NCBI RefSeq assembly: GCF_002571385.2
Contig: NW_019217898.1
Location: forward strand, 74,317 to 138,316
Source of the DNA: Stylophora pistillata
Lineage: Eukaryota
Direction of reading: 5' to 3'
Length of the DNA stretch: 64,000 nucleotides
Below are positions 2,122 through 13,798 of this stretch, piece after piece. A model generated the notes under the pieces. The model made no database searches and was not told where the DNA came from. It saw nothing but the letters and a program-made list of their open reading frames with translations. How positions within the stretch are numbered: the first letter of the stretch is position 1; each line of letters begins with the position of its first letter. A program made the translations under genes and the position numbers.

Positions 2122-5100
2122 TTAAGGCGAATCATCATCATGATCTCTAGACATCGACAGCCGTCGCAATCCACTACTGAAACTACTCTTGGAATCCTTC
2201 ACTGCTTTATGCGTGATTTTCATTTCTGGAATTAGACGACATAAGTGTACAATTAACGTTTTCTGTATGGTCTGCAAGAATGGGACTGATAACATCTGCN
2301 NNNNNNNNNNNNAAGAAGTAGCCGTTTTGTAAGTTTAAGAAGCACAAAAATATCAACTGTCTAAACAAATGTGAAGAGTTCGCAGGGGAAGCAAAACTAC
2401 CGGTTTGCTGGCATGCGTGGCGACGTTTTGCTAAAATGAAAAAAAACAAAAACAAAATCGATGTCACTGAGCTCTCTGCTACCTTAATCGATCAATCGCA
2501 AAAAAAAAAAAGGGAGAAAAAATAATCATTCCAAGAGCGTGCTTTGGGTATGAGATGGAACATAGCCAACGGGGCGCGTAGCACCGAGATGGCTATGACC
2601 AATCTTGTATCCAACGAGCGCGAATGGAAGGTGAATCAGAACACTAGAAATACAATAATCGGAGTTGAAAATCAAACAAAAGAACGTAACTCCAACCTTC
2701 TTTGTCTTCGTCCGTCATGGGTTGTGAAATGACTTTTGACAAACAGTCCATCCACATTCTTCTTTCATTTTCAGTATTCGCCATCATAACAAATTCTCGT
2801 TTAGGTGTTGTAAGAGTGAAGCAGTAGTCTTCGTCCTGATGCTTTCCTGATTTAACTCCTTCTTGAAGAGCAAAGCCTTCAGTGTGGGAGCCAATGATCA
2901 ACTCACCTTTCGCCACAGCGTCCTGTTCAAAAGTCACAACTTAGTTAGCCCTTGGACCCTCTAAGAGTGATTAGCATCTACTTTCTCCTTACAACATCAC
3001 CCCTGAATCAAACATTGATTTCACAAGAGTAAAGGAAATGATCATCAACTATAGAAGTTCTTGATCGTTAAACAAGTTCTCCTTGTAAGGACGTTGAAAT
3101 GAGTAGAGAACAGTATGGAGAATATGCATACTGAGGAACGCTGGAACGGACGAATAACACCCCTGATGAAGGCACTAGAGAGGAGTGTCGAAACGTTGGG
3201 TCAATGAATTGAAATTCCGGTTACATTCATTAAATCTTTAAACCAGAGTAGCATCTAACCATGTCTGACTTTCCTTTGTTTCTGCTTTACCTCGGTCTGT
3301 GATTGGTCCATTCTCTTCACCAACAACACGTTAATATCTCGTTAGCCAATTAGAACTCAAAGTAAATACAAAAAATAAACGGCTATGAAATTCGAGAAAA
3401 CATAAGTGATCAAGTAAATCGTAAAGAATTTAACTTTGCGTCTGATTTGCAAAGGAGATGGCGTGAGTCTTCCGGAACGATCACATTGTGAAATATGGCA
3501 ACCCAAGACAATCATGTATAACAACCCAATTTTCATACTGGATTATGAATTGGATGCCTCGATATACACGAACTCTTATCATGTATTAGTATATACCAAG
3601 ACAGTGGATTACGTTGGAGGAGCGCTCTCATTGGCTACCCAAACTCGGTAAATACCTCCACTTCGGTGAATACTTTTTTAGTATTGGTCGTACGTACCAT
3701 TGGTTGTTCGAAGTACAGAAGTCTTCTGACATCAAGCGAAAACCACCTTTTCCTCCACGGTTCATCCTAATAGAATGAAAAATAACGAAAAACATTTTTT
3801 CGGACTGCCATCCATCTATTTGTAAAACATTTTGTATCGATCGCCAAGAATTACTGGGATAAACTCGGACAGTCGTGGGGATTTATGGTCGTTTCCTTGT
3901 TTAGTCTTGGAGCAAAACGACTTAAATTTGTGTCGAATCGACCACTGATTTGGAGCGAAATGACTTTGTTGCAAATCGGCTTCAACTTTTCAAGAACTCT
4001 GTAGCGAAACGATTGGAAATTATCGTGAGCAAGCACATTCATTATACTAAAAATTACCGATTGAAAATCTATCACTTTTCATCGAATTTCCAAAAATTCT
4101 ATTATACATTTCATTCTCACCCTTGGTCCTCTCTTAGACAAATATCCTTGCATAGTGAAGTCCCTGGTGAGCTCTTTCTCTAACTACAAAACAACACAAA
4201 ATGACAGTTAAATCCACAGCTTGAAATGTGATATGCTCCATACATTCCAGGGCTCGGCACTAACTTCTCAACTTACTAGCCCAGTGGCTGGTGACATCTT
4301 AGATTTTACGACAATTTCAGTTTATTTACTAACCAAACTGGCTAGCGGAAATCGAAAACCACTAGCCAAAACTGAATTTCTACCAGTCTGTGGCTAGTCG
4401 GCTACCCTTACTGTCGAGCCGTGCATTCCCTTGGGAATCAGATTGTATTATTTCTTAGCTTCTTAGCTTCTTAGCTTAGCGGATAGTAGTGCTCAACTAG
4501 AATCTGGGAGGTAAGGGTTCAGTGTGGGTCAAAGTTGCCAGCTATTGTTTCAGACTTCTCATTCTGCACTGCAAAGATACATGGCCAAATTACAGCCAGT
4601 GGAATTTTTTTTGTTCAATAGCAACTCTGATTGAACAACCAAAGCCCTAAAGCAAGGATAAGAGTAAAAAGATTTTTAACAATCTGATTCTATTTGTTAC
4701 CCTACCTTCTCTTGGTCAACATCAGATTCATTGTATCCAAGTAAATCAAGTTTTGCTTTCCTGATGGCCATGTACCATTCCACAACCTCCTGGAGAATTA
4801 AAAATAAATTAATTATCAGCATAAGAGAATAGCAAACTGATTTGAACTTATAACATTATATCTTTCAGTACTCAATGATCAGTTTTCAAAATCTCCCTCC
4901 CTCCCTCCCTGCTGTATCTCAAGTTTTGTTCTAACAGGATGTTGTAATTACTTCGGTCTGTTTGGGTCTTTCAATACTAATATGTAAAAATGCATTGTAT
5001 GTCTTTTAATGTAGTATATAGGCTATAAGTTAAGTATCCCAGCCCTATATTGTACATAGGTATTGCCAACATAAGGAAAGTGGTCTTGGCATTGCAGTTA

Positions 5101-8100
5101 ATTTGCCCCACACCTCCTAATATAATTTTTACCCACTCCCCAGTCATTCTACACTCTACTGCATCATTCCCATTTCCAAAATCTAAATGTTGCCCTCTCC
5201 CCACCCACTACCCCATAACTGCACAATCCCAGCCACCTTCCTGCCTTCACACAAATTTAATCATTGTTCTTCATTACTCTATCATTGTCATCTTTATATT
5301 ACACAAATAAATTCATGCTTTTTAAAACAAACCTGTCCATTTTCAGAGTACACAAAGTAATTCCTTGTCCGTCCCTTTGTAACATATGTTATCTGAAGAC
5401 TATTTTCCTTATTAGTTCTTTCTTCCGCAAAGGTGACATTAATCTCAGTGATTTTCAAATCCTTTTTCGGTTCCCTATCCTAAAAGAAATAAATGTAAGG
5501 ATAGTCACCAATGAACTCAGAAAGTAGTTTAATTAGATGACGAAAAGATGACAGCATGTAATAGATCTTTGTTTCAAGTTTGCACTTACAAGTGCAAAAT
5601 TTATTCCATTCTATTATCCGATCACAAGGTTTACAGTCTTTCAGAGTCATGAATTTCCAAGGAAACCTTCACTCAAGTTAAATAAGGTTGATTAAAGTGC
5701 CTATGACATGAATTTTGTTTTCTCGGTTTTTCTTAGCTTGATGCATATAAAAAATGATTCTAACCTTCAATCCCGTGGAAAAGTTTTCAATCCTGAATTC
5801 TTGTGCTCTAAAAAGTACTATTTTGTAGTGAAAATTGTCTCAGAGTCTGGGACCTAGTTCAACCCTTGCGACAGCCTTTGTGACATAATTTTGTGTACAC
5901 AAAACACCAAGTTGCGGAACGTGTGGAGGTGAGAGGCGAGTCATTCATTCATTTTAGCGAGTGTCACTCTACTGATTCTATAGATTATAGAATCACTCTT
6001 TTTGCCGCACTGTCATCCATGTTGGTTTCGATGGCTGTACACAACTCGACGTCACGAAAGAAAATCACGTGACTTTTAGGCCGTGCAGAAGAGGGGACTA
6101 TTTCATTCGCAGATAGCGCGTGTTTTGAAATAAAAAAAAGGGGTTTGAAGACATTCCCTCCCAGATTAAAGGTTAAAATCGTTTTTCATCTGCATCAAGC
6201 TCAGAAAAACCGAGAAAAAAAATTCATGTCATTGGCACTTTAAATCAAAAAAGCCTTTTGTAAGGACAGAGATCAAATAACACTTCAATTTAGCTAGTTA
6301 CTAACTAAAGTCAACAATGATATCTCCATGTGTTAGAGTATCTTCACGGTGCATAGTGAAGATATCTGTTTTAGAGGCAATATAAATTTTCCCCCATTTT
6401 TCCCAGCATCCAAGCATGGCAACTAAAAAATACCTGATCTCTAATGTAGTAGGCAAGTGAATTGTCCGCCGCAGATAGAACAAAAAGTCTCAGGTTCCAG
6501 CTGTTATCTTCTTTTCCTTTTTTTCTTAAATATCCTCTCAATGAGCCTGAAGTAATAAATTGCATATATTTAATTAATTGGTAAAGATGAATAACAAAAT
6601 CAAATAGAGAATGGAAAAGTTAATTTAATTCAAAAACCAAAGAAACATTACTTGCACAACAAAATGGAGTGAATTAGTGTTGTACAAAGTGACAGATGAA
6701 TGGATAATTGATTGATTTACAGGGTTTTCCAAAGCTAGCCTTTCACTCTACCTGTTAAATAACTTGGCTCTGGTGCACCATCAATAAACTCTTTTCGCTC
6801 ATATTTTGCTCTTATCCACTGCTCCCTCAGCACACTGAATTTTCCCAAAATCAAATGAAAAGGTAAGAGAATGAGGAGAGGAAAAAGTGAAATCTTTAAT
6901 TTATGAAATATCAGATATAAATTCAAAAAAACTAATACATTAGATGGTTTGATCTCAGGGAAAATTGACATGCTTTCAATTAACTATGCTGCTTTGTATT
7001 TTCTATTGAAGATAACAAAAGCATTCTATTTAAAAGATGAAATTGATGTAGAGTATAAAACACAGATAGACTCCCATCACAGAATTGAGCCATTTCACCA
7101 TTATTGACATGAATGCACCAGTATGGCAGTAAGGCACCTTCAGTTGCCAGAATCCTTTTTCTAGGAAGACCCTTCAGGTTTTAACTCTAACTCCTATGAT
7201 CTGATTACAAATTCTTCCCTCTAGCTGCTACACATTTCCTTGTAAAGTGGTTATGAGAATTTGGTGTTAGGTCAAGATAACAACTTCTACCTGATAAGTT
7301 TGAGTATTCTCATAACATATGGATTTAGTATAATTTCAGAGCTGAGTAAAGAGTTTCCAGCAATCTGATTGGTTGAGAGGTTCCTAATATGACACTATGT
7401 AACCGCTTAACATGGTTGATATAAAATGTTAAAATAAAATGTTAATAAATGTTAGTAAAATGTTATGATTTTAGAAATTTCTCTGTTGTTCAGCTCTAAA
7501 ATTATACTAAAACAATTATTCGCCTGAGGTTCAGTGAATATTCACCTCCCCTACGGCGAATAATTGTTAAATAATAGGGAGGGGTTACATAATTATCAAT
7601 CACCCCTTAGGGGTGAAGGGTTAAGTAACAATTTGTCAATCTTAAGCAATAATCTGTTCATGCATTGTGGTATGTGTAGTCCCAAGCATTGAAAATAAAA
7701 AGTGTATCATTAAAAACAATTGATTAAAAGTGTTCTTACTGTGCATCTGAAGGCTTTGGTCGCCGATAGCAAAGAGGGACATTCTTGGCCCACACTGCAT
7801 TCCCCTTAGCATTGCCATGCTCTTCCATAAACTATGAAGAAGAAAACAAAACAGAGATAGGTAGTAAGAAAAAAAATATTAAGAAGCTGTTTAACTGAAC
7901 AGTAAGGATGTCTGGTCAACTGTTCACTTAACCTATGGAGGTCCAGTGCGCCTGTATGCGCCCATGGGGACCCACACCCTTTCTACGCCTTGTGACGTCA
8001 TCACTTTTAACCCTGGAGCACGACTTTGAGCACGTACTTGAACAGGTTGAAAATATCTTACAAACAATACCAGAATGAGCGCAATTGAGTGAAGGAGATT

Positions 8101-11100
8101 GAGGAAATAGCCAAAAAACCATCTAACTTTGACCTGAAAATCTGGACGAAAATCTTGTTCCATTACCCACCTACCTTTCTGAGCATGTGGTTTGAAAATA
8201 ATGAGTAGTTTCTGAAAAATCACTACACCAAAATGAAGCCTACTAAATTTCCAGCTAGTGAGGAGAAACTTCAGGCAAGGAGAGGGGAAAAAAAGGGCAG
8301 GAGAAAGAGAGAAAAGTAAGTCATAAGTGGGGCATTACTTTTCAACCCAAAAACTATCTCGAAATTTTGCTTTCTGCGCGTGCCCAAGATTTTCAGGCCA
8401 CCATTTTGCATTTTTGCAGCTGTCAAAGGGTTTTTGGTAAGTTTGAGCTTTTAAAACCACAACAGAGACCCGAAATCTGCTCGACTAGCTTCAAAACACA
8501 GTTTTCCACAAAAGCTGCGGCCATTAATGGGTTAATATAATCATCACAGGAGGGTGGGGTACCCACTGTATGTAAGTACCTCCAGTTGTCCCTCACAAAT
8601 CCTTTGGAAAAGTCTTCTGAGGATTTTTGAAGGGCAACAGGCAGCCCTTACACTGGGCACGGTTTCTGTCCTGTTATGACTCTCTGCCCAGTCCTATAAT
8701 ACAATGTCAGACAAATGTCAAGAAGATTTCAAGACTGCTTGATCAAGATCAAAACATTAATGATACTCTGACTGATAATATTTCTATGTATGCATATAAA
8801 AAGTACATTGTTAAATGATGAAAACGTCATTAAATAAAAAGTTGAACTGAAAAAATACATCCAGAAATATATTAGAAAACAATTTCACCCACAAAGCCTT
8901 TTCTGATGTGCTGCATAATTGATGACATGTTTACACATTTAAATTGCCATGTTGTTCAATTACAGCTGGTACATCACTGAATTGTTCAGCTGACAATCTT
9001 CTCCCCTCAATCTAATTTTCCTTTTTGTCTTAGTAAGACAAGAGTTGGCAGTCACTGGGTGGCAAAATTCTAAGGTCTTGTCACTCCACCTAAATTATAG
9101 TGATTTCCTTACATTTCAAAGACTGCATTACAGTTTAGCCATTGTTTGGCATGTTGTTTGCTTATTTGTTTTGTTTTGGTATCAGTAAACAGAATTTTTA
9201 GAATGTTTGTTACATTGTTAGAATTACTGCCTATTTGGAGATACCAGGAAGTCACTTGAAAGCTCCAGATGAAAAGGGATACATTGGTTTTTCACCTCAA
9301 GATTTTTGAGGATCAAATTTTGCTCCCATATTGATTTCTTTTTAATCAAGGGAGTTGTATGTACTTGCCTGAGGGATTCAAACACTAAATCACAAGAGGA
9401 ATGTCAAATTTAGAATACATAATTAAAAGAATTGCCCTCAAATCCATCAATACATGACTAGCAGCAACTTGTACTTCAATATTGTTTCTGGTCCATGGTG
9501 TTTAGCTGTGGTCTGATCCAGTAGAATGGATATCGTTGCTTTTATAGGATAGATTAAGAAATGATAAATGTAACATATGTTCACCCTATCTATTAAAATA
9601 TTTTATGCAATAAGCTGATCATATGTGTATTTTTATTGATTCTTACTTATAATCTATTGGAGGAGAGAAATGTAAACAACATTTTTCTTCTACATCATAC
9701 AACAAACAGATTCTATAGCATTGTGGGTCTGTAAAGTACACAGAATCTATTTGTTTAGTAGTTAATTTCCCTGTAGGTGATGTTAGTTTGAATTTTGGAT
9801 TGGGCAAGTTTTCAAAATCAGTGTAAGTCATCCTTCCTTAGTTTCAGATCATGCCAAAGGGTTGAATAATGATATAACTGGTTTGAAATTTTTCAACAAA
9901 GAAAACCCTGAATCAGAAAAAACAATTTACAAGTTGTAAACAAATATAGAACCTCCACAAAACAGCCATTAGTAGATATTTTCTAGAAATATCTTTGTTG
10001 CAATTATAATCAGCCAAAAAATATTATATAAACTAAGTCTACAGAATGTAGTCACTTAGCTGTTAATTGAAATGATATTTTGGCTTTCAACCCCGGACCT
10101 TTCTCTTTATCTTAACTAAGTCTGATATGTATAATATTTAAAATTTTCTTCATATTTCTCCGAGGGTCAAATATTAAAGGATTATCTTTGTTTCCTTTTG
10201 ACTTGCTGTGCCAGTCACATCATGGAATTTGAAAACAACTGTTTTACACTTATTTGTTGTTCAAAATAACTGTTATATTGAATATTTAAATTAGGAAACT
10301 CAATCTGATAATTGTCAACGTCAATTGAACGATAATCAAATATAAATGGCCAAGTCAATTTGGCATAATAGACATTTCTAAAAAATGACAGTTGAGCAAG
10401 GAAATGAATAAGAAACTCATAAAAATAACACACAAATGCTTATGCAATGGATGATTTTCTAGGCTAAAGCGGAGTCCGGCGGAAAAATCCAGGTGGCAAG
10501 CCTTGCTGACAGTGATTCGAACGGAGTATTTTAAAGGTTTTAGGCGTAAATCGTATGTACAGGTCAGTGTTAATTTCAATATGACATCTATATGTACCGT
10601 TGAAAAATCATAGCTTAGCCCGACAAGCAATATTGAATTGAGCCTCTCATAATTTCCATATAAAGTCAAATGATCGGAGAATCTAGTCTAGAGCAATGAT
10701 ATCTGACGCCTTGAGAAGGACACATGGGGTATTGAAAAAATAGAATAGAGGTCTGAACGCTTTGACGCACTGAAAGTCGCAAACGCCTTGATCAATCTCG
10801 AGTTTACCTTTAATTTTTCATCTGTCCAAGTATCAAGCCTTAAACTCTTGACGACAGAGAGCTGTGGTCCTAAATTCCTGTGAATTCCACTGCACGTGAT
10901 ACAAATGAACAGCCCTTTTGACGCTGATGACCATTCGGGATCTGCACGACAGAACATTACAGGAAGTTGCAAAGGGAATCAATCGAAAATTCAAAATAAA
11001 TTTTCAGAGCTGGCCCTCTGGTCATCTCGAATGACGACCTAAGCTTTAAATTCTTACTTGGAGCTCCACAATCCGCACATGTGTTGTTTGAAGGCTGTTT

Positions 11101-11139
11101 CATCAACTCCAATATCGCTACCCTGTTCTTTTCCGTCAT
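2122..11139 (-). CDS. ADAP1: ArfGAP with dual PH domains (centaurin-alpha, ADAP1/2-like), 11 coding exons
   Basis: Exons 11139-11058, 10941-10808, 7831-7740, 6834-6752, 6546-6434, 5479-5333, 4789-4706, 4183-4121, 3766-3698, 2922-2697, 2204-2122 (last exon less certain), all GT-AG and phase-consistent. Motifs: CADC-x16-CITCSGIHR, REQWIRAKYERKEF, PH1 GYLRKKG..WNLRLFVL..EWYMAIR, PH2 GYLSKRGP..WRKRWFSL..RRMWMDCL. Confidence 0.92.
3159..3201 (+). ncRNA. Minimal hammerhead ribozyme-like motif (Penelope-like element type)
   Basis: ACCC-CTGATGA-A-GGCACT-agagagg-AGTGTC-GAAAC-GTT-GGGT: core boxes, 6-bp stem II, 4-bp stem I, palindromic ACGT in place of helix III. Confidence 0.55.
4248..4423. mobile_element. 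Short MITE with hAT-like termini in an ADAP1 intron
   Basis: Ends CAGGGCTCG / CGAGCCGTG, flanked by a CATTC 5-bp direct repeat, with internal repeated CTAGCC/GGCTAG motifs. Confidence 0.5.
5696..6239. mobile_element. Non-autonomous DNA transposon, TTAA TSD, about 85-bp imperfect TIRs (Kolobok-like)
   Basis: TTAA|AGTGCCTATGACATGAATTTT ... AAAATTCATGTCATTGGCACT|TTAA. Confidence 0.75.
7932..8531. mobile_element. Possible TTAA-flanked (piggyBac-like) non-autonomous element
   Basis: TTAA|CCTATGG ... TAATGGG|TTAA with weak TIRs; more CpG-rich than the flanking intron. Confidence 0.35.
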
Positions 11140-12274
11140 TTTGAATGCGGCGAGCTCATCGCGTACCAACGGGGGTGAGGAAAGTATCACGCTCTCCCAC
11201 GCTCATTTCCTCTGTATTGTTATTCTTCCCCATTCCTTGCGCAACATAAGGACATTCGAAACCATACAGGAACACATAAATACCACAATTGGAAACAGGC
11301 AGAAACAAACTGACAGGACTTTTGCGTGCGAATATGGGGAAAGCACTTGTAGAAGTGAGATACAAGTAATTTCGAATAGTTATGTTTTTGAAAAGGTTTG
11401 TTCGAATATAAGGTTAAGTTCCGACGGTACTGTTTATACTATGTCGGTGAATTAAGTAGGAAATAATTGTCGTGTATTTCCATTAGAATTTTCAATCAAT
11501 TTTTTATTAAATATTATACGTTTTCTTGCAGCTTGGCCAGTGGAGGTGAACTGGTTTTGGCAATTACGCTGCAGATGGACAAATTTCTCCGCCTCATGGG
11601 CGCCTTAAGGGCCCCGGAATATTCCGTTACTTAGTGAATAGAGAAGCATTATTTACTTTGCTATGACTTTAAAAGGAATGGCAGAAATCTGTGTCTTTGA
11701 CGAACAGGGAACAAAGACCACGAAATTTTACAATGTCAATCATTTAAACAAAACCACTTCCTTGACAGCCTTACTCTGTACTGCCGATACAGACCATTAA
11801 ACAAGGAAGTGTGAATGGAGTGGGTCTTGCGTCGCTGCTCTGAGTGCGCGCATATCAAATGAAGATTTGGTGCTTATGATAACTGATATCCAGTTAATGC
11901 GATCGCTTTTATGCTAACCCAAAAGAAATTGTCATCTCTACCATAGTTAGTAGTCTACTAACTATGTCTTTACTGATTGATTTCGTGACTTGCCGTTGAC
12001 GCGTGACAAGGTTTCGTGCGCGCGAAAAGAAAACATTGCATGTTCAATGGCGTGAATCGGGATCTCGGAGCACCATTCCACAAATAAATTTCATGAATAA
12101 AATCAACGAAGTATTTGGATTTCCAGGGCCTTAGAGATAAAGAAATTTCCACAAAATTCTCGTTCATGATTGTTATGTGATCTAGTGATATGAAATACAT
12201 CCAGGTCATTGTGACATGTACATAGTATGGTCTCTATAGAGATTCAAATAGTTGAATAATGCGGTTTCCATTAC

Positions 12275-12998
12275 CTGTAGAGTTTCTTCATTCCAGTTTC
12301 CTAGATCAATAGATTTAGTCCTTGAATGTGTAGCTCCAAAACTTGTGTGGACTTGAGCGCAGTTTTGGCATAAAAATAGCCCTTTCTTCAGACAAGTGAA
12401 GCTAGGATCTGTTGGGAGAAACCATAGATGCTAATTTCTAAGTTTAAGCTTATTAGGAAGTAAGTGTCACATCAACTTATCGTTCAGACTGATTCTTGAC
12501 TTGAGCCTTGTGAGTCCATCGGTTTGTCTGTTCAAATGCTAGGCTTTATTTACTGTCGCGTGGAGGAGCTTATAAAATCCCTCTAATTTGAAAAGCGAAT
12601 GGATGAGGTAGTACGATGGAAAGACACTATCACCTATAATAAGCGACCTTAAAGCACAGCTTTCCTTGAAGCACCGACTTCTGAAGCGCTTGTATCGGCC
12701 CACAACGCCTTCTGACAGTTACAGACATTTCATATCTACGATACCTCGCCGCTTTTTCTATGGCTTTGTTCGATACTTACAAGAATAAAGTTTTGCGCAG
12801 CTACCCAGCTAATTGCCATTTTTTTGGATGCATTAGTGGACTCGTTAACAACGCCAGGAAACATCTAAACATATCTCACCAAAATATGACACCATTACCT
12901 TGTTTGCAACAGTCCGCACAGACATCGTTTCCATTCTCTTGTTTTAGCGCCACAATGGCAGTTTTAGCCTTTTCATTTTGTCTCCTAACCGTGGACAT
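12275..12998 (-). CDS. Duplicate, divergent ArfGAP exon 1b (12998-12899) and exon 2b (12408-12275); probable alternative N-terminal cassette of ADAP1 lacking catalytic residues
   Basis: Translates to MSTVRRQNEKAKTAIVALKQENGNDVCADCCKQ/DPSFTCLKKGLFLCQNCAQVHTSFGATHSRTKSIDLGNWNEETLQ. GT-AG sites are intact. Exon 2b is 134 nt, the same as exon 2a, with the same phases (1 and 0). Confidence 0.85.
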
Positions 12999-13798
12999 CT
13001 TTTTCAAACATTTGCCACCGATAAACTTGTTAGTCAGTTAACTTATTGCTCAGTCATGCCAGGACGATAATTATATTCTAGTGAGCCGAACATTTGTCCG
13101 AAACTGAATTATTTGTCAACAGTTGAATTGATTTGCTTCGGGTCGACAATAACAGGCCAAAATCTCGTATCACGTGAGCCACATGTCAAGTCTGTTTCAG
13201 TTTAAATAGCATTATCTAGCGGTTCGCGGAAAAAAAAAAAACGCCCAAAAAGGAAGCTTGGAAGTCAAAACTGAAAAAAAAATCAAATATTTTGCGCATG
13301 GAAAAGCTTAAGTCCTTCTAACATGATTCGCTAATTCGCAGTGTCTTGCCTCCGTGAGGTCAACTTTTTACATAGCTTTAGTTAGTAAAACGAACGTTCT
13401 CTTTCTAAAGATTCTTTTTAAAAACGAAATACCCATATACTTTGAAGTATAAATCGAACTTTACTCAATGAACCTTGGGTGCCCAGAACGGATATTTGTT
13501 GCACTTTCTTCGATTCAAACAGAAGTAAATAGCGCATTCTTTATCATTTAGCCATCTTACTGAAAACGAAAATTTCAATTTGTCTTTGTAATTACCACGG
13601 AAAACTACAAATTCGGAAGTTGACTCATCAACGTTTCATCAGTAGAAAGAAGGAACGTCAGTAATGAGAACATACTTCCGCCTGCAGCGATATATTTTTC
13701 ATTCATTTTGAGGTTGTCCCTTTTCGATACAAATGAATAAAGGCTGATAGTCTCGAAAGAAACTGTTTGGGGCTGCGCCGGTGGGAGTAACGAAATAA

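Follow-up and report, generated by a model that had tools for sequence, protein, structure and literature searches.

ADAP proteins (centaurin-alpha type) carry an N-terminal ArfGAP domain followed by two PH domains and act as a switch-off enzyme for the small GTPase Arf6. The ArfGAP domain is defined by the motif CX2CX16CX2CX4R, in which the arginine is required for activity (PMC2542466), and activity is lost when this finger is mutated (PMC6724607). In mammalian ADAP1 (centaurin-alpha-1; PDB 3FEH and 3FM8) the R49K mutant is used as a GAP-disabled form (PMC4337568), although stimulation of GTP hydrolysis on an Arf is unproven in vitro for mammalian ADAPs (PMC2542466). Pseudo-GAPs, as well as ArfGAP-domain proteins that bind Arf without promoting hydrolysis (the latter mentioned in PMC2542466), show that a conserved GAP fold that lacks, or does not use, the catalytic arginine can be kept under selection for a non-catalytic role. 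Finally, UGT1A and the clustered protocadherins have several alternative first exons in tandem, each with its own promoter, and promoter choice decides which unit is joined to the shared body of the gene.

We analysed a window of 64,000 nucleotides that carries the ADAP gene of the coral Stylophora pistillata (assembly GCF_002571385.2, contig NW_019217898.1, positions 74,317 to 138,316; coordinates below are those of the window). A sequence-only reading had proposed that two extra exons, 1b and 2b, lie upstream of the canonical exons 1a and 2a and encode a second, catalytically dead ArfGAP cassette. The observation is correct, i.e. both exons exist with the proposed frames, GT-AG sites and residues. 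The parts of the locus are as follows.

12999-13117, minus strand: 5' untranslated part of exon 1b
12899-12998, minus strand: coding part of exon 1b (100 nt) with the ATG, a basic N-terminus and the first CxxC (CADC) of the zinc finger; it ends ..CAA G|gt, in phase 1
12275-12408, minus strand: exon 2b (134 nt; acceptor cag|AT, donor CAG|gtaa) with the second CxxC and with Thr in place of the arginine finger (CAQVHT), Phe for Trp (PSF) and Gly for Asp (SIDLG); it ends in phase 0
11140-12274: spacer between the cassettes, holding the inferred a promoter and a spliced plus-strand (antisense) transcript with an exon ending at 11393, an intron at 11394-11529 and an exon from 11530 to about 12160
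11058-11139, minus strand: coding part of exon 1a (82 nt) with the ATG and the first CxxC of the canonical cassette, 93% identical to Acropora isoform X2
10808-10941, minus strand: exon 2a (134 nt) with the canonical PEW, CSGIHR (Arg49) and SLRLD (Asp64)
7740-7831, minus strand: shared exon 3 (FMEEHGN...), the acceptor for both 2a and 2b
2125-6833, minus strand: shared downstream coding exons 6833-6750, 6544-6434, 5479-5333, 4789-4706, 4183-4121, 3766-3698, 2922-2698 and 2226-2125, encoding the rest of the ArfGAP domain and the two PH domains (whole-codon matches, true exon ends lie within 1-2 nt; a run of N separates the last two)

The phases are the same in both cassettes: exon 1 ends after the first base of a codon and exon 2 ends in phase 0. 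Only the proposed frame of 1b and 2b is open, whereas the other two frames each carry stops. The two second exons are identical at 16 of 44 whole codons and at 48.5% of nucleotides. Third codon positions match at 14 of 44, so they are saturated and the duplication is old. Exons were searched one by one, and full-length comparisons used database proteins. Exon 2b alone matches the Pfam ArfGap profile (PF01412) with E 5e-10 and 39.9 bits against a cut-off of 28.7, which is far beyond chance; exon 2a gives E 2.5e-16. The full b isoform scores 104.6 bits (residues 14-127) and the a isoform 134.8 bits, and both carry two PH domains at about 140-235 and 255-360. This is the ADAP architecture in a protein of about 370-400 residues, and the best named relatives are ADAP1/ADAP2-like proteins from cnidarians to vertebrates. 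High-affinity PI(3,4,5)P3 / Ins(1,3,4,5)P4 binding through the PH domains is a further mark of the ADAP subfamily, and these domains are shared unchanged by both isoforms. No Rfam family matched anywhere in 7600-13400.

The CX2CX16CX2C spacing is intact in the b isoform (C27, C30, C47 and C50), and all four Cys are kept in every b cassette of seven genera. The arginine finger, in contrast, is replaced by Thr55, the conserved Trp by Phe37 and the conserved Asp by Gly70. The motif alignment is unambiguous. The sequence-only reading equated these positions with the catalytic Trp, arginine finger and Asp of ASAP3 (W451/R469/D484). This numbering is consistent: R469 is named as the finger (10.1101/2019.12.18.881771), and our PDB match places W, R and D at +0, +18 and +33, which gives 451/469/484. 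The roles of W451 and D484 rest on the assignment by the sequence-only reading. In ASAP1, W479 and D512 are putative interface residues with the same 18/15 spacing, although none of the papers we examined confirmed them.

Expression was examined in four RNA-seq runs from four studies, here called X1, X9, X21 and X24. The 1b>2b junction (12408/12899) is present in all four (depth 50 in X1 and 3.9 in X9; 2 reads in X21 and 5 in X24), and the 2b>3 junction (7831/12275) in X1 (50), X21 (2) and X24 (2). We note that the counts in the raw-read runs are small (2-5). Exon 2b thus joins the shared exon 3 and not a private one. The a junctions 10941/11058 and 7831/10808 (the latter seen in all four runs) have 3-10 times more support, and the b form makes up roughly 10-35% of transcripts. 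A 1b>2a joint is possible in frame, as the sequence-only reading had pointed out, but neither this nor a 2b>2a joint is listed in these runs, and no hybrid occurs among about 45 database N-termini. Full-length b open reading frames in transcript assemblies carry 1b-2b-3 and both PH domains, and are identical at 400-403 of 404 residues to the database b isoform (P0075).

Transcript contigs of the b form end at 13114 in X1 (record 5, 12899-13114) and at 13117 in X9 (record 15, 12899-13117), depth falls to about zero beyond 13225, and no joint into exon 1b from upstream is listed. The start of the b form is therefore inferred from contig ends without cap data, and since one contig has 22 unaligned letters beyond 13114, an upstream non-coding exon cannot be excluded. 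By this inference the b promoter would lie just upstream. The sequence-only reading had proposed an E-box as part of it. CACGTG is found at about 13171-13176, 178 nt upstream of the 1b ATG, but it is absent from the 500 nt upstream in four other species (loci L007, L009, L010 and L011), so it has no support as a promoter element.

The suggestion that the cassette is hidden was wrong. The b isoform of the window is, residue for residue and exon by exon, the annotated S. pistillata isoform X1 (P0075), and the two isoforms are the same as those in the database (XP_022788454.1 / PFX26918.1). These records are automatic annotations without any remark on the missing arginine finger, on the duplicated-cassette origin or on the Arg/Thr difference between genera, and we found no paper that discusses the b form. 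RefSeq lists matching X1/X2 pairs in Acropora, Montipora, Porites, Pocillopora, Orbicella and Oculina. Orthologous cassettes with intact frames are present in at least seven coral genera. For Nematostella and Actinia RefSeq lists a single a-type product, which is weak evidence of absence. Word-based searches with the Acropora b cassette found only Acropora; the other genera were reached through members of the same sequence clusters. At the genomic level, orthologues of exon 1b lie in loci L007-L014. The order 1b-2b-(antisense gene)-1a-2a-3 is conserved in Porites, Orbicella and Oculina (L012, L013 and L014), i.e. in both major clades of stony corals, a comparison that leaves out Acropora and Montipora. 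The antisense transcript of the spacer, seen from the GT..AG joint 11393/11530 with reads of the opposite orientation, is a remnant of the SMAP-domain gene that is nested here in other corals.

The variability of the two cassettes was compared by calculating dN/dS with counts summed over exons. Cassette b is under purifying selection with dN/dS of 0.14-0.23 among Thr-bearing lineages, significantly below 1 in every pair (Fisher p 1e-8 to 2e-3). Within the Thr-bearing robust corals the values are 0.14-0.17 for b, 0.03-0.08 for a and 0.06-0.11 for exon 3. Cassette b evolves 3-10 times faster than cassette a at non-synonymous sites. The Thr codon itself varies synonymously (ACA, ACT and ACG). One could argue from the faster evolution and the minor share of transcripts that cassette b is a decaying partial duplicate whose use is transcriptional noise. 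However, the open frame, the ATG and all four Cys are kept in seven genera and the splice sites in six species although synonymous sites are saturated, and together with the dN/dS values and the 10-35% share of transcripts this contradicts the decay reading, which we consider all but ruled out.

The residue at the finger position differs between genera. Cassette b has Thr in Stylophora, Pocillopora, Orbicella, Oculina and Acropora, whereas Porites and Montipora keep the Arg and the Asp; every cassette a has the Arg. Acropora and the robust corals have Gly in place of the Asp. In the cassette tree the a and b clades each receive 100/100 support. When the two trait columns are removed, Acropora b groups with Montipora b (94/89), and that pair with Porites (97/97); Acropora and Montipora belong to one family. 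This points to two parallel losses, in Acropora and in the robust-coral lineage, from an ancestral b cassette that still had Arg and Asp. We note, however, that the AU test on the 76-column cassette alignment does not reject a single clade of all Thr-bearing cassettes (p 0.24), so parallel loss rests on the species relationships plus a moderately supported tree. As for the origin of the cassette, exon 2b is no closer to 2a (37%) than to one other paralogue (38%) in this genome, and the intron before P(D/E)W is shared by other ArfGAP genes. The case for a tandem duplication of the ADAP 5' end, rather than an origin from another ArfGAP gene, therefore rests on position, the ATG-bearing first exon and the a/b tree, and not on intron positions.

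Our explanation, to which we give a probability of about 0.75, is that coral ADAP has two tandem, anciently duplicated 5' cassettes, each with a first exon with its own ATG and a 134-nt second exon, together encoding the N-terminal 72-78 residues of the ArfGAP domain, i.e. the zinc finger and the catalytic loop. Transcription from the distal start would give 1b-2b-3, with a splice that skips the antisense transcript, the a promoter and cassette a, and transcription from the proximal start 1a-2a-3. The data themselves establish that both forms are expressed with b as the minority, that the arrangement is conserved in both clades, and that cassette b is constrained but evolves several times faster than a. 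By contrast, the separate promoters and everything concerning function, i.e. catalysis, Arf6 binding and phosphoinositide binding, are inferences from sequence. In this view the b isoform folds as an ArfGAP-like domain that cannot stimulate GTP hydrolysis on Arf6, and would act as a phosphoinositide-binding, partner-binding ADAP without GAP output which may compete with the a isoform for membrane sites or partners. The interpretation of the sequence-only reading, i.e. a pseudoenzyme isoform from an alternative promoter that keeps both PH domains, is well supported at sequence level: every computational test set out beforehand as a possible refutation was run (the junctions, the orthologous cassettes, dN/dS and the acceptor exon), and none refuted it. 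Nevertheless, "catalytically dead" and "dominant negative or scaffold" remain inferences from the missing arginine finger.

Two other readings of the b isoform bear on the same residues. The first is that it is still an active Arf GAP with a non-canonical arrangement, e.g. another basic residue or a co-factor supplying the finger. Purifying selection acts on the whole cassette, an Arg remains eight residues downstream (HSRTKS), and ArfGAP activity can be boosted by partners such as coatomer (PMC2542466). However, the finger Arg is described as invariant and required (PMC2542466, PMC6724607), Trp and Asp are changed as well, and the downstream Arg is common in ordinary ArfGAPs that still need the finger, which makes this reading very doubtful. 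The second is neofunctionalisation, i.e. the Arg-less module binds something other than Arf6-GTP, for example another small GTPase, a kinesin-type partner or a lipid, and so has a positive function of its own. All b cassettes share a signature absent from a (F/Y for W, a Cys two residues later, VH(T/R)SF, SR(T/I)KS and a longer basic N-terminus). This signature predates the loss of Arg, because Porites and Montipora have it too, constraint persists after the loss, and the same two replacements apparently occurred twice. No partner is known and the signature could equally reflect relaxed but still structural constraint, so we regard this possibility as unlikely, although not excluded. The intronless Arf-family genes found in this genome (loci L015-L018) look like Arf1-like or Arl-like paralogues and not like Arf6.

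A more far-reaching reading, which we offer only tentatively, is that stony corals toggle ADAP by promoter choice between an Arf6 GAP and a non-hydrolysing form, and that selection favoured the latter twice, with the same replacements (Arg>Thr and Asp>Gly) at the putative catalytic and interface positions independently in Acropora and in robust corals. The b isoform would then be a positively selected Arf6-GTP "holder", or a GAP-independent PIP3 adaptor, rather than a relaxed leftover.

Compared with mammalian ADAP1, the a isoform has its arginine at exactly position 49 in CSGIHR, and the b isoform is the natural counterpart of the R49K mutant, except that the replacement is Thr and not Lys, that it comes with W>F and D>G, and that the gene itself encodes it through a duplicated two-exon cassette. 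To our knowledge, no such cassette has been described for vertebrate ADAP1 or ADAP2. In comparison to UGT1A and the clustered protocadherins, each unit here has two exons and encodes half of a catalytic domain, so that the choice toggles the catalytic residue rather than a substrate-binding or adhesion specificity. Pseudo-GAPs and non-hydrolysing ArfGAP-domain proteins are separate genes, whereas the coral forms are isoforms of one gene that share the rest of the domain and both PH domains.

Arf GAPs are debated as being both terminators and effectors of Arf signalling, and the two roles are separated with engineered arginine-finger mutants. Here a whole animal order appears to encode that separation naturally, since one gene makes a canonical ADAP and a second form, Arg-less in Acropora and the robust corals, that differ only in about 75 residues of the catalytic half-domain. 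For genome annotation it is a reminder that the "isoform X1" listed first for these corals is the non-canonical, probably inactive form. It is also an example of a pseudoenzyme, as inferred from sequence, created at isoform level by a duplicated exon cassette. The fact that Montipora and Porites still have the finger in the second form, while Acropora and the robust corals do not, gives a ready-made comparative system for asking what the GAP-independent functions of ADAP are.

The region 7600-13400 was read on the minus strand, and the observation made in the sequence-only reading held, i.e. the region contains exactly the exons that it described. The exons concerned are the following.

12998-12899, minus strand: exon 1b, an ATG followed in frame to give 33 codons plus one base, with CADC near its end and a G|gt donor.
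12408-12275, minus strand: exon 2b, 134 nt, with a cag|AT acceptor and a CAG|gtaa donor.
11139-11058, minus strand: exon 1a of the canonical pair.
10941-10808, minus strand: exon 2a of the canonical pair, also 134 nt.
7831-7740, minus strand: the shared exon 3.

The two cassettes have identical phases. The second exons are identical at 16 of 44 whole codons and at 48.5% of nucleotides, and third codon positions match at 14 of 44, so the duplication is old. Only the proposed frames are open, and exon 2b alone passes the Pfam ArfGap cut-off (E 5e-10). The zinc-finger spacing CX2CX16CX2C is intact, whereas the residue four positions after the last Cys is Thr instead of Arg, the conserved Trp is Phe and the conserved Asp is Gly. 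The intron positions are not specific to ADAP, since other ArfGAP genes of this genome share them. A short run of N, seen as X in the ORF list, lies at about 2230-2700 in the intron between the last two coding exons of the gene.

The use of the exons was investigated by mapping reads to 7600-13400 from two transcript-contig runs (X1 and X9) and two raw-read runs (X21 and X24), which come from four studies.

Support for the splice joints in the four RNA runs (depth for runs X1 and X9, read counts for runs X21 and X24).
1b>2b (12408/12899): X1, 50; X9, 3.9; X21, 2; X24, 5.
2b>3 (7831/12275): X1, 50; X9, none; X21, 2; X24, 2.
1a>2a (10941/11058): X1, none listed; X9, 36; X21, 5; X24, 13.
2a>3 (7831/10808): X1, 152; X9, 36; X21, 6; X24, 12.

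All spliced reads have the orientation expected for a minus-strand gene, and from the junctions and the exon depth the b form is about 10-35% of transcripts. No 1b>2a or 2b>2a joint was listed in these runs; the 1b>2a joint, which the sequence-only reading had proposed as a further possibility, is possible in frame but was not seen. Contigs of the b form extend to 13114-13117 and no joint enters exon 1b from upstream, so exon 1b behaves as a first exon, although this rests on contig ends without cap data and one contig has 22 unaligned terminal letters. The E-box (CACGTG, 178 nt upstream of the ATG) that had been suggested as part of an alternative promoter is not conserved in four other species. 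It is conspicuous that at 7794-8569, in the intron between exon 2a and exon 3, the RNA depth is enormous on both strands, i.e. up to about 45,000 in contig depth and 100-150 raw reads per bin, against 2-7 on the exons, with many variant letters, small internal joints and loose ends. This looks like a highly expressed multi-copy repeat; no Rfam family matches it.

Exons were searched one by one, and full-length comparisons used database proteins. A profile-free search of 1.8 billion representative proteins with exon 2b returned five b-type genomic ORFs, whose contigs (L007-L011) each carry both a 1b and a 2b orthologue, in order and with conserved splice sites. One of these ORFs led to RefSeq proteins. 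Acropora muricata, A. millepora and A. palmata each have an isoform X1 (b-type) and an isoform X2 (a-type) that are identical from FMEQHGN onward, and the same pairing exists in Montipora, Porites, Pocillopora, Stylophora, Orbicella and Oculina. The Stylophora pistillata isoform X1 (P0075), which is also the original GenBank product, matches the window exactly, exon by exon, i.e. 1b, 2b, exon 3 and eight further exons down to 2125, and P0048 is the a isoform of the window. The description of the cassette as hidden is therefore not correct. The transcript-assembly ORFs P0081, P0082 and P0087 are 400-403 of 404 residues identical to P0075. At codon 36 of the b isoform (12401-12403) P0081 and P0082 read Arg (DPRF) where the window and P0087 read Ser (DPSF), a non-synonymous polymorphism next to the Phe that replaces the conserved Trp; Pocillopora also has Arg here. 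Both isoforms have an ArfGap and two PH domains, the ArfGap scores being 104.6 bits in b and 134.8 bits in a. In Pocillopora verrucosa the RefSeq models of isoforms X4/X5 (P0074, P0077) join other first exons to exon 2b, one of them starting inside exon 1b in another frame. The products lack the first CxxC of the zinc finger and are probably minor or spurious forms.

The genomic loci of Porites lutea (L012), Orbicella faveolata (L013) and Oculina patagonica (L014) show the same order, i.e. 1b, 2b, then 1a, 2a, then exon 3. The Orbicella assembly shows cassette a twice, identically (L013 16896-17217 and 23093-23414), beside long N runs (11,866 N in the locus), which is most likely an assembly duplicate and not a third cassette. 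In all three loci an antisense gene lies between the cassettes (L012 5013-8126, L013 5357-7860, L014 3763-5848; also L011 2938-3303). It encodes a Lys/Glu-rich protein with a SMAP-type C-terminal motif (LGQWG..DKFLRLMGA; Pfam PF15477 on L011). The second intron of the b form thus spans another gene, the a promoter and cassette a. In the window only a spacer of 1135 bp remains (11140-12274). It still gives a spliced plus-strand transcript with an exon ending at 11393, a GT..AG intron (joint 11393/11530) and an exon from 11530 to about 12160. In this transcript LGQW and DKFLRLMGA lie in different frames, so it is probably a decayed remnant of that gene, transcribed divergently from the a promoter.

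The selective constraint was estimated by the pairwise Nei-Gojobori method, summed over the two exons. Cassette b has dN/dS of 0.14-0.23 in the comparisons where both partners carry Thr (window against L007 and L008, L007 against L008, and Acropora against Acropora), and each differs from neutrality by Fisher's test (p 1e-8 to 2e-3). Within robust corals the same species pairs give 0.14-0.17 for b, 0.03-0.08 for a and 0.06-0.11 for exon 3. Against Porites, dN is 0.35-0.41 for b and 0.03-0.06 for a. At the protein level a is 82-97% identical among genera, the shared body 62-89% and b 43-78%. In other words, cassette b is constrained but evolves 3-10 times faster than a, and the constraint continued after the arginine was lost.

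The distribution of the catalytic residues differs between lineages.

Residues at the finger position and at the Asp position.
All a cassettes, including the sea anemones Nematostella and Actinia: Arg; Asp.
Cassette b in Porites and Montipora: Arg; Asp.
Cassette b in Acropora, Stylophora, Pocillopora, Orbicella and Oculina: Thr; Gly.

Every b cassette has F or Y for the Trp. The codons at the finger position are AGA in Porites, ACA in the window and in Acropora, ACT in L007 and ACG in L008; Arg to Thr is thus one step, and the Thr codon has since drifted synonymously. A likelihood tree of the cassettes separates a from b at 100/100 support, although it does not tell whether the duplication predates the split from sea anemones, and RefSeq lists only an a-type product for Nematostella and Actinia. 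With the two trait columns left out, the tree recovers Acropora b with Montipora b (94/89), and that pair with Porites (97/97), which matches taxonomy as Acropora and Montipora are both Acroporidae. We note, however, that the AU test on this short alignment does not reject a single Thr clade (p 0.24). The most parsimonious reading is two independent losses, one in Acropora and one in the robust-coral stem, each replacing the same two residues in the same way.

The isoform pair is present in public annotation, but full-text searches found no paper on coral ADAP isoforms, and none that pairs 'pseudoGAP' with ArfGAP. We regard the case as an alternative-first-exon gene combined with a putative pseudoenzyme isoform, and the apparently parallel loss of the same two residues makes it of added interest.

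The ArfGAP domain is defined by CX2CX16CX2CX4R, with the Arg required for activity (PMC2542466), and mutation of the finger abolishes activity (PMC6724607). R469 is the finger of ASAP3 (10.1101/2019.12.18.881771), ADAP1 R49K is used as a GAP-disabled mutant (PMC4337568), and the a isoform has its Arg at position 49. The interpretation given in the sequence-only reading, a pseudoenzyme isoform that keeps both PH domains and could act as a dominant negative or scaffold, is supported by the sequence and transcript data, with the loss of activity and the role remaining inferences. The analysis itself demonstrates that two cassettes, each by inference with its own promoter, are joined alternatively to a common body and that the b cassette lacks the finger, whereas the catalytic state and the function of the b isoform are deduced from sequence and literature only. 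It is also reported that mammalian ADAPs lack in vitro GAP activity even with the Arg (PMC2542466), which adds to the uncertainty. In this genome the b isoform would be a natural finger-less ADAP that keeps its PH domains, and we infer that it may act without GAP output, as a competitor of the a isoform or as an adaptor with its own partners. Four intronless Arf-family genes of 184-218 residues lie elsewhere in the genome (C42:195741-196253, C10:478523-479038, C236:313913-314404 and C74:732412-732909; L015-L018). They are Arf1-like or Arl-like in appearance and none is obviously Arf6. The corals with Thr in cassette b would make, from one gene, both a canonical ADAP and a form that may work without GAP output.
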